Of a stretch of 64,000 nucleotides of DNA, positions 55,480 to 64,000 are shown piece after piece; position 1 is the first letter of the stretch; the number at the start of each line of letters is the position of its first letter. Made by a program: the position numbers and the translations under genes. The DNA is from Cyanophora paradoxa CCMP329 (taxonomy: Eukaryota > Plantae > Glaucophyta). The notes under the pieces were generated by a model. The model saw only the letters and a program-made list of their open reading frames with translations, was not told where the DNA came from and made no database searches. The stretch covers positions 1-64,000 of the forward strand of contig QPMI01000243.1 in the NCBI GenBank assembly GCA_004431415.1, given 5' to 3'.

Positions 55480-56495
55480 CTCCGGGAAAGGGTTCGACTC
55501 CCGGCGGGTCGCACCTTTTGGCGGGAGGATCTCAGCAACCGGCTGGGCCACTTCGAGTCTCGTTTGAGCCTCCCTCGCCGGCTGCGCTGGTAGTTAAAAC
55601 ATGGAGATCCGCGGCGGCATTGCGGCAGCAGCAGCTATGCAGCAGCGTCATGTCTCCGGACAACACGATCCGGGGGGCCGCTGAAAGCACTTCAACGAGG
55701 CCAAGACGCACCCCGACACGCTGGCCTCGGCCCTGACGCAGGCCATGCGTCTGTCTCAGCGGGATGCGGTGCGCACCATCTAGATCCACGTGCACGATCG
55801 CCTCGGGGTCGCTGTTCTGCATTTGACCATGCCGCGCTGCGCCATGCGCAGGTCCGTTCAATGTCGGCCGTGCTGATGCGCGGCCGCGGTCGGCGCATCA
55901 TGACCCGCGAGAATTCGAACGAGACCCTGTGGACGGCGATGCAGGCGGAGACGCAGCAGTACGTGAAGACCGAGCTGGTGGCGGCGGTCGAGAGCGAGCC
56001 GCAGCACCACATCCGCAACAAGATCTGCGACACCCTCTCTGACCTCGCGGCGCTCGAGCTCGAACACGGTGCGCCCCCGCGCGTGCCGGGCCGGGCGGGA
56101 CGCGTACGGGGCGGGGGCGGGCAGCCGAGTGTGCGGCGCGCAGGTGGGGACGTCGAGTGGCCGGAGCTGCTGCCGGTGATGTTCAACTGGACCAAGTCGC
56201 CGCGCGCGAAGCTGCGGGAGTCGGCGCTCTGCATCTTCGCGAACCTCGCGAACTCGATCGCGGAGAAGCTGCAGTCGATGATGGGCGCGCGTGATTCTCG
56301 TCATTCCGAAGATCTGAAGGCCACGCTTGCCGACTGTGTCCAGGACGTGCGCCGGGGCCCGCGCGCTCGCCCCGCCGCCCCGCCCCGCCGCGCGCCGACC
56401 CCGCGCAGGTGCTGCTGGCGGCGCTGCGGGCGACGGGCAATTTTCTCACCTCCATCGAGGACGAGAACGCGGCCCTTCCGAAGTGTCGACCTCCT
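55480..56495 (+). pseudogene. Importin-5 5' fragment pseudogene (DNA-level inverted duplicate, introns retained)
   Basis: Aligns to the reverse complement of ~31095-32170. The start region is deleted, it has frameshifts, and it is truncated after TSIEDEN. Confidence 0.92.
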
Positions 56496-56938
56496 CTCGA
56501 AATTTACATGATCTCCATCTGGCGGAGTTCTTCTACTGAGAATTCGTCTTTAATTTTCCCCCTTCTGACCGATCGTGCACGGATCCCGGCCCCCGTCGAA
56601 GGCCTCCCCTCCGCATTAGTTCCCCTCTATCCTTTTTTTTCTGGATCCTTGAATATTGGATCTGATGATCATGATCACGTACGCGTGTGCTGATAGTTTG
56701 ATCGTGATCATGATCATGATCACATTCAGCTTAAGCCCTGCGCCGCGGCGCGTTAAAAATTACAGCCCTGCCCTTAAGCCTGCTTACATGCAAGCTCTCG
56801 AGAGCAAGCTTAGCTCGAGCTCGCTGATTGCAAGCCGGCAATCATGAAATCTGGTATTGAACGTATACTGACTCATGATCATGGGGGGGGGGGGGGGGGG
56901 GGGGGAGAGGGAGGGGGAGTGTGTAGCCTGGGTTATAG

Positions 56939-59900
56939 CTAGCTGGAGAAGAAAGGGGAGGCGAGGTACTCGTAGGGGGGGTAGCGGAGCTTGTCGAGGC
57001 CGTCGATGTGCGTCTGCATGCAGTGGCCGACGGGCTCGTTGACGAGGACGCGGGACTCGTCGACGAGGAAGGCGGAGAAGAGGGAGAGGGCGAAGAGGGC
57101 ATCCAGGTTCGCGTAGGCCCCGGCGCGCAGGACGAGCGAGCGCGCCGCGGGGCTCTGCAGCCGCTCCACGAGGAGGTACGTCGCGAGCTCCTCGGGCGGC
57201 GCGTTCTGCAGCGTCGTCGCCATCTGGCGCCCGAGCTGCTGCGAGCCGTCCTCCTCCTCGTAGTACGTCGTGAGGGCGAACTTGGAGGGGTGCTTGACGG
57301 CGCGGGCCACCTGGGCGCCGTTCTCGTGGCCGGCCTGGAGGGACCAGCGCCCGAGGACGGCCTTGCGGAGGCGCTTGGCGCGCGTCGGGTCGGCGACGAA
57401 GCGCTCGAGGACGCCGGGCTGGTTGAGGAGCACGTAGTGCATCCAGCGCGAGCCGAGCAACTGCAGGCCCACCGGCGGGCCCTTGACCGCCGCGCTGCAC
57501 TCGAGCGCCGTGCGGACCTCCCACTCGCGCTGCGTGGGGTAGTCGTCGGGGTGGTGCCCCCCGCGGAAGAGGACGACGGCGACGTGGCGGCCGGCGACGC
57601 GGAGCTCGCCCCCGGCCGGCTCGACGCGGAGCTCCTCGGGGGCGGCGGCGAGGGCCTGGAGGGAGCGGCGGACGCAGGGGAGGCGGTACTGCTCCCAGAG
57701 GAGGAACTCGAGCCAGCGCTCGTCCACCTCGTCGTGGGGGCCCCCGGGCACCACCATCAGGACCGCCGTCTGGGGCGTCCAGTGCTGCTTCGCCGGGGCC
57801 TCCTCGCCGGCGGCGCGGGCCCTCGCGGCGGGGGGCACGAGCCCGCGCTGCTCCTCGTAGAGCCGCGCCGCCCGCGCGACCGCCGCGGGGACGTTCACCA
57901 GCAGCGGGTTCGGCGGCATCACGACCCCCGCGTACGCCTCCACCCCCGTCCGCTGGATCACGTGCCTGCGCCCCGCCCCGTGAGCGCGGGAGGCAGAGGG
58001 ACGGGGGCGGGGCGGGGCGGGGCCGCACTGGTGCATGAGGGTGGCGAGGCCGGAGAGGGCGAGGGGCGTGCCGTACGTCGAGGCGTGCTTGACGCACTTC
58101 ACGGCGGGGCCCTGGGCGCGGCTGGTGTCGACGAGGAAGTCGAAGCGGTGGAGGGCGAGGGCGACGGGCTGCCGCGGCGCCTCGTCCGCGTAGGCGGCGC
58201 GGTAGACGCCGAGCAGGCCCGCCACGAACGAGTCGACCATGGCGTAGCCCTCGAGCTGCGAGGTGACGAAGTCGAAGTCCCGCGAGGCGCGCCAGAGGAG
58301 GAGCGCCAGGTCGGGGGCCACGCCCCGCGCCGCCGCGTAGCCGGCCTGCGGGAATGGCTGCGGGAGCACGGAGACGGCGGCGTGCATGGCGTGGCCCCAG
58401 GGCCCCGGCACGTCGCGCCCGGGCCCCGTGCCGGCGCCGAGCGAGGCGGCGGCGGTGGCGCCGCTGGAGAGGAGGCCGTGGTGGAGCATCCACTGCGCCG
58501 CCGTGTCCGCGAGGGACGCCGCGAGCCGCGGCGGCACGTGCCGCGCGAAGTGCACGGCCGCCTCGTAGGCGGGGAGGATCCAGGGCCCGCCGGCGGGGTC
58601 GGCGGGGGCGGCGCCGAGGCGGGCGAGGGTGCGCTCGCCGAGGGCGGAGGAGGCGCGCTCGTCGCGGACGGCCTTCAGCGCGCGGAAGCCGCGCTCGATG
58701 CGCTCGGCGAGGGCCACGCGGTCCTCGGCCGCCCGCTTCGCCGCGGCGAGGAGCTCCTGCATGCGCGCCGCGACGCGCTGGCGCTCCTCGGCGACGTCGG
58801 CCTCGAGGCGCTGCTGCTGCCGCCGCATCGTCCCCAGCAGCGCCTCGTACTCCTCGCGGAGGGCGGCGAGGCGGCGGCCCTCCTCCTTCCTCACCTCCAG
58901 CTCCACGTCCACGAGGCGGCGCTCCAGCTCGGCCTTGGCGGCCTCCGCCTCCGCCAGCTGCCGCTCCACCTGGCTCCGCTTCAGCCGGCTCACGGCGACG
59001 ACCTGCACCCAGCGCTCCATGTTCCGCACGCTCGCCGCCGTCAGCCGCGCCTCCTCCGCCTCCCGCACCGCCCCCTCCCCCTCCCCCGCCTTCCACGCCC
59101 CCGCCGGGGCCGGGGCGGGGGCCTTGGGGGCCGCGGGGGCGGCGCGGGGTGCCGGGGGCGGGGCGGCGCGGGCGCGGGACTCGGCGAGCTGGCGGGCCTT
59201 GCCCTCGAGCTCGGCCGTGGTGCGCGAGAGGGCGCCCTCCAGCGCCGAGAGCTCGTCCCGCTTCGCCGCGAGCTCCTTCTTGGTCATGCGGAGGACCTCG
59301 TCCTGGTCGGCGAGGCGCGCGGAGAGGGCGGCGACCTTCGCCTGCAGCTCCGCCTGCGCCCGCGCCGCCTCCTCCGTGAGCACCCGCAGCCGCCGCACCT
59401 GCCCGGGGGGGTCAGGGGATGGGGGCGGGGGCGGCGCGGGAGGACGGGGCCGGCTCGCCTCGTAGCTCTCGGCCTCGGAAGTGGCGGGGGCGGGGCGGTC
59501 GGCGGGGGCGGGGGCGGCGGGGGGGACGACGCCGGAGCGGAGCTGGTCGATTTTGAGGGCGTAGACCTGGGCGTGGGTGCGGAGCTGGCCCTCCTTGGCG
59601 TCCAGCGCGTGCACCCGCGCGAACAGCGCCTGCAGCTCCGAGAGGGCCCCCTCCTCGGGGCCCCCGCCCCCCTCGCCCCGCCCCTCCGGCCCGCCCTCGG
59701 AGAAGCGCGCGCTCCACGCGAGGAGGTCCTTGCGGAGGGCGCGCTTGATCGCCAGCACGCCCCGCAGCTCCTCCTCCGCCCCCGCCAGCAGCCGCTGGAG
59801 CGCCGGCACCTCCCACGGCGAGCTCGCCATCAGGCCCTCCACCGTCGGGCCCTCCTCCTCCCCCGCCCCCGCCCCCGACGCCGCTGCCGCCGGGGCGCCC

Positions 59901-61588
59901 TCGCCGTCGCCGCGGCTGGCGGGGCGCGGGGCCGGCTCGTCGCGCTGGGCGGCGTCGGCGAAGGCGGCGAGGGCGGAGCGGAGGGCGTCGACGCGGGACT
60001 GGAGCTCGGCGCGCTCGCGGGCGGCGCCCTCGCGCAGCTTGCCCCCCGCCTCGCGCTCGAGGGCGAGCTCCTCCTCGGCCGCCGTGAGCCGCCGCGCCAG
60101 CCGCTCCTTCTCCGCCTCCGCCTCCTCCCCGGCCTTCTGCAGCGCCTCCATCCGCCCCGCGCCGCCCCCAGCTCCGCCTCCGCCCGCGCCGCCCGCGCCG
60201 CCTCGGCCTCGGCGGCGGCGAGGCCGCCGACGCCGCCGGCGCGCGCCTCGAGGAGCTCGCGGGCGGCCGCGTCGGAGCGCTCCTGGAGGGCGCCAGCTCC
60301 TCCCGCAGCGCGGCGGCCTCGGCGCGGGCGGCGCGCTCGGCGGCGGCGGCCTGGCGGGCGGCGTGGGCGGCGTCGGCGGCCTCCTCGAGGGCGGCGGCGA
60401 GCTTCTCCTGGAGGCCCTCGACCTCCTCGACGAGGGCCCCGATCTCCGCCTCGAACGCCTCCTTCGTCTTCCGCTCCGCCGCCTTCGCCCGCTTCGGCAG
60501 CTCCCGCGCCAGCGCCGCCGACGTCGCCACGTCCTGCAGCGCCCCCTGCAGGTCGAACTCCGCGGTGCGGGCGACGAGCGCCTCGAGGCGCGCCGCCTCG
60601 GCGGCCGCCGCCTTGCGCAGCGCCGCGTAGCGCCGCGCGGGGCCCTCCTTGGCCTCCCGCAGCAGCTCGTCGATCACCACCTGGGCCGCCTTGTCCCGCC
60701 CCGCCTTCTTCTTCAGGAAGCGGTAGTTGCCCCGCACCGTCTCGATCAGCCACACCAGCCCTGCGCGCCGCCTCGGCCGGGGCCGCGCCGCCAGCGGGCG
60801 GGGCCGGGCGGAGGGGTGCGCGCACCCTCGCCGATGCGGGGGTCGGGGCGGTAGTTCTTGTTGGAGGGCGCGTCGGAGGCGCGGGCGACGGCCTCGGTGC
60901 CCATCACGCGGTAAACGAGGCCCTCGCGCATCTGCGAGACCCCCAGCCGCTGCTCGATCTCCTCCGGCGTCAACGCCCCCGGCACGTCCTGCTTCGAGCA
61001 GAATCTGCACCACCCGCCGTCAGCGCGCCCCGCCGCCCGGCCGCCACGCCTCGCCGCACATGACGAAGGGCTTGGCCTGCGTGCGGGGCTCCCGGACGAG
61101 CTTGAGGAGGAGGCGGCGGTTCTTCTGCAGGTTCGCCTCATCGCTCGAGTCCACCACGAAAATGAAGCAGTAGCACTGCGCCGCTGGCGTCAGAGGGCGG
61201 AGGGGCAGCTGGCGGCCGCCGCCGCACGTCGATGAGGTAGTTGGCCCAGACGCTGGGCTCGATCTTGTAGTTGTGGCCTATCTCGAAGGAGGCCGTGGTG
61301 TAGCTAACGGGCTCTCCGTCGCACAGCACAGTCTCTGGCCGCTCTGCGCCGCGGGCGCTCAGGGAGGACTCGGACCCAGAACAGCCGCCCCGCTCACCCT
61401 TAACGAGCTGGCCGCAGGAGAACTTCAGCGCTGGCAGAAGCGACCGCTTGCCGCTGCCGATGCATCCCACCTGCGCCCGGGCGCTCAGCTATGCGGCTCG
61501 ACCGCCGAGCCTCCGCGACACGCACCAGAGCGATGGGCAGCCAGGTGGGTCGCGCCACTGGCGCATCTGGTCTGGCCTCGGCAGCCAT
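56939..61588 (-). CDS. Fusion protein: degenerate ARL13/Arf-like GTPase + long coiled coil + degenerate eukaryotic glutathione synthetase domain
   Basis: IALVGCIGSGKRSLL, FIFVVDSSD, FCSKQDVPGAL, DPRIGEGLVWLIETV; a coiled coil of roughly 600 aa; then HAAVSVLPQPFP, LALHRFDFL, VAVVLFRGGHHPDDYPTQREWEVRTALECSAAVKGP, QPGVLERFV, YLLVERL. Two apparent 1-nt indels (~60290, ~60155). Confidence 0.8.
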
Positions 61589-61764
61589 GCCGGGCCCGCT
61601 GCTCGCTGCCGTCGTTGCTGGTGTGTTGCGCTTATTTTGCTTTTGGGGGGTGGGGTCGCAACGGGGTACAGTGCAAACTCTGCGCTGTCCGAGCCCCGAG
61701 ATCTGTGTCGATCAATACGGGCCTCTCGAAACGCGCCTGCGATGCAACGCTAGCCGTTGCGAGG

Positions 61765-64000
61765 ATGCCGGCCCAAGAGCAACTCATCTTGAGGCTACTG
61801 CTGGACGCCTGGCAGTCCAGGCGCTCGCCGAAAGCATGGGAGAAGAGATGCCGTGCGCTCCTCGCGTCCGGCGGTGCGTTGGAGGAGGAGCTGAACGGGG
61901 CCCTCCAAGGTACCACCGCCTCCGAACGTCGCCGCCCCTCGTGGACGCGCTGACACGCGCCGGTAGATATACTACTACAACAGCTGCTGTGCGGGGCGCA
62001 TCCGAGCCCACAGATCCAGTCCTACCTGCGCTACGGGCTCCATTCCGGCCTTATCTCAGTGCCGGCGTTCGTGGAGCGCGTGTGCAATGGTTCGTGTGCC
62101 CAGGCGGTTGTGTGCTGCTGCGTATTGGCTGACCGCTCCCTGCAGTGGAGCGGTGGCGCAAAGCGCTCCTCGACCCGCGAAGGCCCCTGCACTTCAACTT
62201 CGTCCTGCAGCTCCTTGAGGAGTTCCTCCCGAAGCTGCCGGCGTCGGCCCGCGGGCCGGGTGCGCTGGACCGCGCCAGGACAGCGCCTCTGCCCCGCAGA
62301 ACCTCTTTCCCGCAGACCAGCGGATCACGACGGAGCGCGCGCTGCGCGTCGCTGCGGTGATGCTGGAGGCGTGCGTCGCGCTCGCCGAGGGTGTCGCAGA
62401 GGCGAAGGACGGCACACCGTGCGCCCCGCCGCCGCCGCCGCCCCCTGCGCCCCCGCCGACGTTCCTGCGCAGGGGCGACGCGGACCGGCGCTGCAACAGC
62501 CTGCTCGAGAAGCTGCTGTCTGATCCGTCCGCGGCGTCGCTCATTGCCGTCGCGAGCCGCGAGCTGCCGGGTGCGCGCTGCGCGTGGCCGCGGGGAGGCG
62601 CGACGGGCCGACCGGGGACGGCAGACGCGTGGGAGCGGTTCCAGCGCGCACGGAGGAGGGCGGCGGGCGATTCGAAAGGCCCTGCGCAGGAATTGCCCTC
62701 GGTGTGGCCGGCGTCGGCGATGTGGCGGCTGGCGGGGCCGGAGGCGGGGATCAGCGGGCACGCGCACAGCCTGGCGGCGGTGGATTGGATGCTGGCGAGC
62801 CTGGCGAGCGGCGAGGCGTGCGTGGCGGCGTGGCTCGGACCCGAGGAGCGCCTCGAGCGCGTCGAGGCCGCCTGCAGCGTCCGCGGCTGGCTCGCCCACG
62901 GGCCCCAGGCTGCCCTCGCCCTCTGGACCGCCGCCCTGCGCCTCGCGCCCCGTCCGGGTTCCGACCCCGAGGCCCCGCCCTGGCCCCGCCGCAGCCTCCT
63001 CCTCTCCGTGGTGCGTGTCCCGGCGCCGGCTCCCCGCGCCCCGCGCCAACTGCCGTGCAGGTGCCGGCGATGGTGCGGGGGCTGCGGGAGCGGTGGCCCC
63101 GCGGGGCGGCCGCCCCTCACGCTGAGCGGGCCCTCGAGGGGGCCCTCCACGCCCTTGGCCTCGCGTGCGCGCGCCCCCACCCCGCCCCCACCCCCCGCCC
63201 CTGAGCGAGGGCGGCGCAGCGGCACGCCGCTCGCCGGCGAGGTGGTGGCGCACGGGCTGCGCGCGGGGCCCTCCGCCGCGAGCTGCTGCCGGCCTCGCTG
63301 CTCGAGCCCGAGCCGCGGGCCCCCGAGGAGGCCGGCCTCGAGCAGGCCCGCGCCCGCCTCCGCTCCGACGACCCCGCCGAGCGCGCCGCCGGCCTCGCCG
63401 AGGCGCTCGAGGCCGCCGCCGGCTCGCCGGCCGCGCCCCCGCGCGTGGCGCACCAGGCGGCGGCGGCGCGGCTGGTGGCGGACGCGTGCGACCCCGCGTG
63501 GCACGGCGGCGACGCGGGGCGCGCGGCGGCGGCCGCGGGGGCCCTCGTCGCCGCCCAGGGCGCCCTCGCGGCGGTCGCCCTGCACGGGCTGCTGCGGCCC
63601 CTCGCCGCGGGGCTCGCGCGCGCCGCCGAGTCGGCGGCCGAGGGGCCCGACCTCACCGCCGCCTTCGGCGCCCTCGTCGGCGTCCTCGAGCGCACCCTCC
63701 CCGCCGCCGCCGCCGGCGACACCAACCCGCCCGAGGCCGAGGCCGCCGCCGCCGCCATCGAGGCGGCGGGGCGCCCCGCGCTGCCCGGTGGTACCGCGCC
63801 TGGCGCAGGGGCGGGGTCGACGCGCTCGGGCCCCTCTCCGCGGAGGCCACCGGGCCTCGCCGAGCGCCGACGGGGCGGCCGCCGCGGCCAAGGCCGAGGT
63901 GATCGTGCTCGACGGGGACACGCCCACGGCCTCCCCGCCCGCCGCCGAGGCGCCCGCCGCCGACCTCGCCGCCCCGCCGCCGACGCCGCCGCCGAAGCAC
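61765..64000 (+). CDS. Mediator subunit MED24/Med5/MED33-like; 3'-truncated by the window edge
   Basis: LLLDAWQSRRSPKAW...ILLQQLLCGAHPSPQIQSYLRYGLHSGLIS resembles the MED24 N-terminus (LLEQAMIGPSPNPLILSYLKYAISS, recalled from memory). Confidence 0.65.

Follow-up and report, generated by a model that had tools for sequence, protein, structure and literature searches.

A degenerate ARL13-type G domain, a long coiled coil and a degenerate glutathione synthetase fold in one predicted protein of Cyanophora paradoxa

A gene at positions 56939 to 61588, on the minus strand, was analyzed in a window of 64,000 nt, i.e., the whole stretch from 1 to 64,000 of contig QPMI01000243.1 (assembly GCA_004431415.1) of the glaucophyte Cyanophora paradoxa CCMP329. 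The predicted protein joins an N-terminal ARL13-type G domain, a coiled coil, and a C-terminal domain with the fold of glutathione synthetase (GSS). By motif alignments, both enzyme-type domains are without the residues required for their chemistry, as had been claimed in a first-pass annotation made from the sequence alone. The locus is probably one expressed nuclear gene whose product would act as a non-catalytic dimeric scaffold or tether rather than as an enzyme, judging from alignments and structure models. For pseudoenzyme biology, it is a rare case of a whole eukaryotic GSS fold that survives the loss of the ATP pocket, and the same chain carries another dead domain as well.

The first-pass annotation had read one spliced gene from the ATG at 61588 to the stop at 56939. 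The start, the stop, six introns, and a single codon phase were all found, and this model was adopted. The region has a G+C content of 66-82%. All introns were GT-AG, i.e., 61525-61471, 61397-61344, 61227-61176, 61059-61005, 60825-60761, and 58028-57966. With two missing bases restored, the corrected model, built by script, has 1,435 codons and one stop only, the terminal one. Database and fold searches were run with the exon open reading frames (ORFs) or with the EukProt model P0001 as input, and the joined sequence was used only for length, composition, and heptads. The features of the gene are as follows, with residues counted in the corrected protein.

56939..61588, minus strand: whole gene, ATG at 61588 and stop at 56941-56939, seven exons and six GT-AG introns
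61526..61588, minus strand: exon 1, start ATG at 61588 and the N-terminal 21 residues; Gly2 and an N-terminal Cys are both absent
61398..61470, minus strand: exon 2, P-loop G-C-I-G-S-G-K-R-S, with Arg at the place of the Mg-binding Ser/Thr
61228..61343, minus strand: exon 3, switch I and switch II (E-I-G-H-N against DxxGQ, with a 3-residue deletion just upstream)
61060..61175, minus strand: exon 4, beta4/alpha3 of the G domain (FIFVVDSSD...)
60826..61004, minus strand: exon 5, G4 S-K-Q-D, degenerate G5, and a 14-residue insert
58029..60760, minus strand: exon 6, end of the G domain (GLVWL helix), coiled coil of ~740 residues, Pro-rich linkers, and residues 1-171 of the GSS-like domain
58541..60758, minus strand: coiled-coil middle, residues 184-923
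60287..60288: assembly error 1, one base (plus-strand G) missing; the restored protein reads ...REELAPLQERS...
60154..60155: assembly error 2, one base (plus-strand C) missing; the restored protein reads ...AARGRMEALQK...
59399..59458, minus strand: 60 nt, an intron in the EukProt model (it would be GC-AG and in frame), encoding a Pro-rich 20-mer
57966..58028, minus strand: intron 6, 63 nt, GT-AG, within the GSS-like domain and skipped in RNA contigs 9 and 15
56939..57965, minus strand: exon 7, stop codon and the final 341 residues of the GSS-like domain
56942..58540, minus strand: dead glutathione synthetase domain, residues 924-1435

The open frame is interrupted at two places, both within exon 6, where the first-pass annotation had noted two 1-nt indels. 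Between ~60800 and 56942, the third codon position had a GC content of 0.97-1.00 in a single phase, which shifted only near 60290 and 60155. This constancy with two switches therefore indicates a continuous coding sequence that is short of two bases. Contigs of the public runs X15, X17, and X1 were aligned to 56700-61800, and an extra C behind 60154 and an extra G behind 60287 were found in them. The contigs of X15 and X17 were spliced, so they are RNA-derived, and X1 is a DNA run. Because independent RNA-type and DNA contigs carry the missing bases, the indels are considered assembly errors and not lesions of the gene. Exactly two breaks (~60287 and ~60154) were thus present in the frame, and both were filled. 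The opposite case that had been envisaged, i.e., real indels in a silent locus, does not agree with bases that are present in RNA and DNA contigs and with transcripts that are spliced.

The EukProt protein P0001 (EP00741_Cyanophora_paradoxa_P006684, tig00001030_g6465.t1, 1,336 aa) was aligned to the window in ten exact blocks and carries all four Pfam domains. It is the automatic gene model of this locus. P0001 bypasses the two errors through "introns" at 60422-60283 and 60231-60137, and it is short by 47 and 32 residues for this reason. Both introns were rejected as false, since RNA contigs are continuous over 60175-60759 and 59826-60204. A third gap of P0001, 20 residues at 59458-59399, would be a GC-AG intron. 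This stretch is tentatively read as exon in the present analysis; the RNA contigs listed do not cover it. G/C runs of this assembly lose single bases and so mimic frameshifts, and public gene models mask the losses with false introns. Other calls of "pseudogene" or "frameshifted" in this genome need the same comparison with reads.

The RNA contigs were spliced at four of the six introns (61397-61344, 61059-61005, 60825-60761, and 58028-57966). At the 5' end, an RNA contig of run X19 connects 61398-61461 with 61230-61343, i.e., exon 2 with exon 3. RNA contigs 13 and 18 connect 60825-61004 with 60175-60759, so exon 5 is joined to exon 6 and the transcript continues to 60175. Contig 18 also contains exon 3, and its record coordinates leave space for exons 1, 2, and 4 and a leader of ~40 nt, with 116 nt left for exon 4. 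RNA contigs 12 and 17 overlap contigs 13 and 18 at 60175-60204 and extend to 59826. A split into two genes near 60150-60300 had been feared, and the two unbroken contig stretches given above run across this interval. At the 3' end, RNA contigs 9 and 15 hold the entire GSS-like domain with the 63-nt intron removed, joined to 59068, ~180 codons into the coiled coil. Because of the RNA contig joins together with the unbroken codon phase, there is very little doubt that this is a single gene.

In Pfam search, GSH_synth_ATP (PF03917, 1.2e-39) and GSH_synthase (PF03199, 2.5e-18) were found in the C-terminal part at 136.6 bits (cut-off 25) and 67 bits (cut-off 20.9). Sequence matches in the PDB were potato GSS (4.7e-40) and human GSS (2.8e-35). 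An AlphaFold model of the domain, made with 75 aligned sequences, reached a predicted local distance difference test score (pLDDT) of 90.7 and a predicted template modeling score (pTM) of 0.91. By Foldseek, the model matched potato GSS1 5OES with a template modeling (TM) score of 0.79 by query length and 0.91 by target length (E 2e-37). For the listed chains of human, potato, and ligand-bound yeast GSS, the TM scores were 0.79-0.81 by query and 0.85-0.91 by target length, and all solved eukaryotic GSS were matched well ahead of any other ATP-grasp protein. With the Pfam matches and the complete modeled fold, the homology to GSS proposed in the first-pass annotation extends from end to end. The profiles expected there, i.e., Arf, GSH_synth_ATP, and GSH_synthase, were all recovered, and the GSS fold was modeled.

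The ATP, Mg, and substrate roles of the GSS motif residues are established from solved GSS structures. In this domain, the motifs were replaced just as had been stated, i.e., ExNT by KHAS, GTKKVQ by GSRWMH, KPQREGGGNN by TTYYEEEDGS, SELG by FALS, and RTK by QTH. For a wider comparison, 229 sequences were aligned, i.e., 227 GSS homologs of normal length, this domain, and its paralog P0018, and columns with at least 90% conservation among the 227 were counted as conserved. The dead domain kept 32 of 67 conserved columns, whereas the Cyanophora protein P0043 kept 64 of 67 and the median of the 229 was 65. Of ligand columns, only 4 of 22 were kept, against a median of 22. In the alignment with human 2HGS, the replacements were E144K, N146A, S149Y, S151T, E214P, N216D, Q220E, Y270H, K305W, K364T, E425L, R450Q (the catalytic Arg), and K452H, and the glycine-rich loop GGGNN was changed to EDGSQ. 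R125, R267, E399, and perhaps E368 were retained. In the set of substrate ligands and catalytic Arg (R125, S149, S151, E214, N216, Q220, R267, Y270, and R450), only R125 and R267 remained.

Compared with eukaryotic GSS (human 2HGS, potato 5OES, and yeast 1M0T), the whole fold is common to both, and a GSS-type dimer interface is predicted here. However, 18 of 22 ligand columns are replaced in the fusion, including the catalytic Arg, and the ATP lysines and Mg ligands are gone. The Cyanophora dead domain also differs in that it sits behind 923 residues of other protein and on a very long branch.

A homodimer of the domain was modeled with residues 831-1330. Its interface score, ipSAE, was 0.70, whereas the best of three controls reached 0.00, and the runs showed at least 80% contact agreement and a partner pLDDT of at least 79. 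The mark for a homodimer was reached by 21 of 30 microbial proteins solved as one-chain pairs and by 0 of 23 single chains; for eukaryotes, by 17 of 29 and 0 of 30. The modeled interface is formed by 839-848, 870-877, 996-1000, and 1075-1091, which we take to correspond to the N-terminal and R221-region interface of known GSS dimers. GS and GS-like proteins were reported to purify as obligate dimers (PMC5919673). Because of the homodimer model and these obligate dimers, the protein is read as a parallel dimeric rod.

The N-terminal part, residues 19-164, was matched by the Pfam Arf family (PF00025) with 61 bits (cut-off 22.3; E 1.3e-16). Alterations of G1, G3, and G4 had been claimed for this domain, and the alignment agrees with each of them. 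The P-loop, G-C-I-G-S-G-K-R-S, retains the Lys, but Arg30 is aligned with Thr31 of Arf1, and GxxxxGK[S/T] is lost. Switch II reads E66-I-G-H69-N70 against D-V-G-G-Q of Arf1, with the 3 residues upstream deleted, so that neither DxxG nor the catalytic Gln is found. In G4, S-K-Q-D, Lys and Asp are retained but the Asn of NKxD is lost. G5 is not recognizable, and the 14-residue insert then leads into the GLVWL helix. On these alignments, the domain is without the Mg-binding Ser/Thr of the P-loop, the glycine of DxxG, and the catalytic Gln.

The assignment of this domain as ARL13-like holds in part. A published phylogeny (PMC8358228) places it there, whereas the sequence scores of solved relatives favor Arf1/Arf6 (55-56 bits) over Chlamydomonas ARL13B (~50 bits, in a longer alignment of 14-198), and the GLxWL helix, which had been taken as a mark of ARL13, is general to the Arf family. 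A PDB search with the C-terminal part of the G domain gave just Arf6 fragments (E ~0.3) and no ARL13-specific match. No Cys, such as the palmitoylated N-terminal one expected in ARL13 and Arl13L proteins, was found before residue 24. Neighbors in a protein atlas, ARL15 and ARL16 (0.92, with few shared features), were treated as leads only and were not used. The only RVEP, the form of the ciliary motif (VxP/RVxP) of ARL13B, which is expected in the tail, is at residue 1207 (~57620) in a loop of the GSS-like domain; ~0.5 is roughly expected by chance, and it was given no weight.

The fusion shares with ARL13B/ARL13 (Chlamydomonas 4M9Q and 5DI3) a coiled coil and Pro-rich stretches immediately behind an Arf-family G domain, a missing catalytic Gln, and no N-terminal myristoylation site. 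Unlike them, it has also lost the glycine of DxxG and the Ser/Thr of the P-loop, and it has no N-terminal Cys. Its tail, ~five times longer, terminates in a GSS fold, and ARL13B is not the best-scoring solved relative. In addition, Cyanophora encodes a canonical Arl13 apart from this gene, in which the P-loop GLDGAGKTT is intact and DVGGG is found.

The middle of the protein, residues 184-923, is composed of 25% Ala, 14% Glu, 12% Arg, and 11% Leu. Heptad-rich stretches were found at ~224-596, 635-717, and 775-920, and Pro-rich linkers at ~601-650 and 711-740. When heptads of L/I/V/M/F were scored in 28-residue windows, 31% of windows exceeded the 95th percentile of shuffled sequences and 10.5% exceeded the 99th, i.e., 6-fold and 10-fold over shuffles. 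A long helix is predicted to start at residue 206 in a low-confidence model. With heptads from ~residue 224 and Pro-rich windows behind the G domain, the protein has the layout expected of ARL13 and Arl13L proteins. Weak Pfam coiled-coil matches were ATG16, FPP, and HMMR_N. Homology to ATG16 was rejected; the raw ORF scored 35 bits and P0001 25.6 bits, the latter below the cut-off, and the match is read as coiled-coil composition.

Part of this protein has been published. Residues 1 to ~270 are identical to CpxArl13L2a of Vargova et al. 2021 (Genome Biol Evol, PMC8358228; supplementary dataset 1, table 1, and figure 14), where it was taken from an older assembly and marked as without extra domains. 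The published model departs from the frame after ~residue 270, and as an out-of-frame, truncated model it shows neither the coiled coil in full nor the dead GSS domain. Arl13L was described there as glaucophyte-specific, with several paralogs per species, and as "a highly divergent offshoot of Arl13" (PMC8358228). Read by eye, CpxArl13L1, L2b, and L2c and GwiArl13L1 and L2 are also without the DxxG glycine, and in CpxArl13L2b and L2c the P-loop Lys is replaced by Arg. The complete Gloeochaete sequences of the group likewise have long coiled coils; the two Gloeochaete proteins are without the GSS-like end, unlike the Cyanophora fusion. For the ARF field, this means that the published Arl13L2a is a truncated model of a protein five times longer, whose end carries a fold unreported with an ARF-family domain.

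Multidomain members were counted as 75 of more than 2,000 in the ARF family (PMC8358228). Among these 75, a GSS domain was reported in none, and the word "glutathione" is absent from the text and the supplements examined. TRIM23, the ciliate Arf-RSP3 fusion, and Arl17 (section 13 of PMC8358228) are likewise lineage-specific additions of domains onto an Arf-family G domain.

In an exhaustive HMMER search of 1.84 billion representatives, 1,352 GSS relatives were found, and the closest besides P0001 were 33-40% identical and of ordinary length. No second long fusion was found in this search. Word-index searches for long relatives of the GSS or the GTPase part returned only P0001, which is weak evidence alone. 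In the literature searched, neither the fusion, nor a GSS fold retained after loss of the ATP site, nor 'tig00001030' was described. The first-pass annotation had known of no described protein with this architecture. This agrees with the literature searched for the fusion itself, but a publication exists on the GTPase part, and EukProt already contained the fused model as an automatic prediction. What seems new, by the papers searched, is the fusion and the GSS fold retained without an ATP site, whereas the parts, the named GTPase, the accretion of domains on ARF proteins, and the reuse of GSS in nematodes were known. The fusion is so far confined to one species.

A separate intact GSS, which the first-pass annotation had suggested to look for, is present in Cyanophora as P0043 (tig00021489_g21677.t1). 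A second dead-GSS paralog, P0018 (tig00021043_g17623.t1), was also detected as a 5'-truncated model with equally few ligand residues. P0018 aligns colinearly to P0001 over residues 1006-1312 of the latter, with 40% identity. P0018 and the dead domain have eight identical derived residues in common at positions that are conserved in normal GSS, and they form a clade (Shimodaira-Hasegawa-like approximate likelihood ratio test, SH-aLRT, 99), which a long stem separates from every canonical GSS. From this clade, the common derived residues, and the equally few ligand residues, the dead state is considered to be old and kept through duplication. P0018 may be the tail of another Arl13L2 fusion, i.e., CpxArl13L2b or L2c. 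The P0018 model starts in mid-domain, and its low-complexity inserts look like translated intron. In a free tree, the dead domain was unplaced, and the approximately unbiased (AU) test does not reject a clade with glaucophyte GSS (p 0.61). By sequence, an origin of the dead domain by local duplication is compatible with these results, not proven.

If the protein is a scaffold or tether as proposed, it would neither switch by GTP hydrolysis nor ligate peptides. Two chains would be held together by the coiled coil and the GSS-type interface in a parallel dimeric rod, whose two dead-enzyme heads would be binding modules. Such a tether or scaffold would resemble those that ARL13-type proteins form through their coiled-coil tails. 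No evidence was found that would put it in the flagellum, a place suggested by descent from ARL13 only.

Several points weigh against this proposal. The substrate-site arginines equivalent to human R125 and R267 are retained, and Glu368 maybe as well, so a small ligand could bind. In the G domain, the P-loop Lys29, the G4 Asp129, and a possible switch I Thr remain, and some nucleotide binding is possible. The AlphaFold model of residues 1-290, made from a single sequence, had a pLDDT of 41.7 and no reliable fold. The homodimer score may reflect memory of solved GSS dimers. The listed RNA contigs leave gaps in the coiled coil at 59069-59130, 59394-59521, and 59680-59825, and so a full-length single transcript is probable, not certain. 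On the last point, the DNA contigs of X1 break at similar places (59636/59665 and 60175/60201), where repeats give many loose ends. The RNA contig breaks coincide with those of the DNA, and therefore they are explained as repeat-caused graph breaks in low-complexity sequence and not as transcript ends.

The rival explanations follow one another in likelihood as pairing with live GSS, a new ligand role, and an artifact or pseudogene. The leading one, itself unlikely, is that the dead GSS head heterodimerizes with live GSS (P0043) and thereby places or tunes glutathione synthesis at the site of the ARL13-like and coiled-coil parts. Dead paralogs that bind live relatives are a common theme of pseudoenzymes, and here an intact GSS is found in the same cell and the dimer-interface region is kept and predicted to pair. 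Eukaryotic GSS and GS-like proteins are also obligate homodimers (PMC5919673). However, the identity between the dead domain and P0043 is just 34% in matched stretches, the two are on long separate branches, and the coiled coil would favor homodimers. Somewhat less probable still is a new activity of the GSS-like domain, either in sensing thiols or peptides or in catalysis, in line with what was proposed for the GS-like effectors of nematodes. The fold is intact and confidently modeled, and the equivalents of human R125 and R267 stand. The effectors of cyst nematodes are a close parallel, i.e., duplicated housekeeping GSS that form dimers (5OEU, 5OEV, and 5OET), lost GS activity, and were reused, and they appear to be enzymes (Lilley et al. 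2018, PMC5919673). The effectors are secreted, single-domain proteins and retain the catalytic Arg and, in the ATP pocket, 13 of 15 residues (PMC5919673), whereas in Cyanophora the pocket and the catalytic Arg are lost and the domain is the C-terminal head of a coiled-coil protein. With this internal, C-terminal position, there is no signal peptide. The ATP lysines, Mg ligands, glycine-rich loop, R450, and K452 are all replaced here, and therefore no basis for ATP-grasp chemistry is visible.

That the gene is an artifact or is dying, i.e., two neighbors fused by a predictor or a frameshifted pseudogene, is largely refuted and has very little chance. The window does contain two frameshifts, the EukProt model needs odd introns, the listed RNA contigs cover the coiled coil incompletely, and very GC-rich DNA yields long chance ORFs. 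Against these, independent DNA and RNA contigs are without either frameshift, the GC phase of third positions is unbroken, and the transcripts are spliced. In addition, 1,435 codons are without an internal stop, and the fold is conserved in the paralog P0018.

The non-catalytic scaffold or tether is therefore kept as the preferred reading. A bolder extension of it, which is doubtful, is that a private glaucophyte family of long dimeric tethers arose from ciliary ARL13 and that, in Cyanophora, the dead-GSS head at the distal end captures live GSS or senses glutathione or thiols. If true, local redox chemistry would be tied to flagellar or cortical structure, and the pseudoenzyme pair would be a localization device.

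Some minor observations were made beside these results. Of other GSS homologs, P0095, 548 aa on an ENA metagenome contig of 7.5 kb, keeps only 9 of 22 ligand columns; it is a further GSS in partial degeneration, apparently unrelated to the glaucophyte pair. P0133 (Synstelium, 800 aa) joins GSS with a Cpn60/TCP1 domain, and P0262 (774 aa) joins GSS with epimerase/dehydratase domains; each may be a real fusion or a merged gene model. Around the gene, RNA contigs of X15 and X17 were also found at 61663-61800, upstream of the start codon, i.e., a longer leader or a neighboring transcript. Directly downstream of the gene, an ORF with importin-beta-like repeats was found at 55861-56511 on the plus strand.

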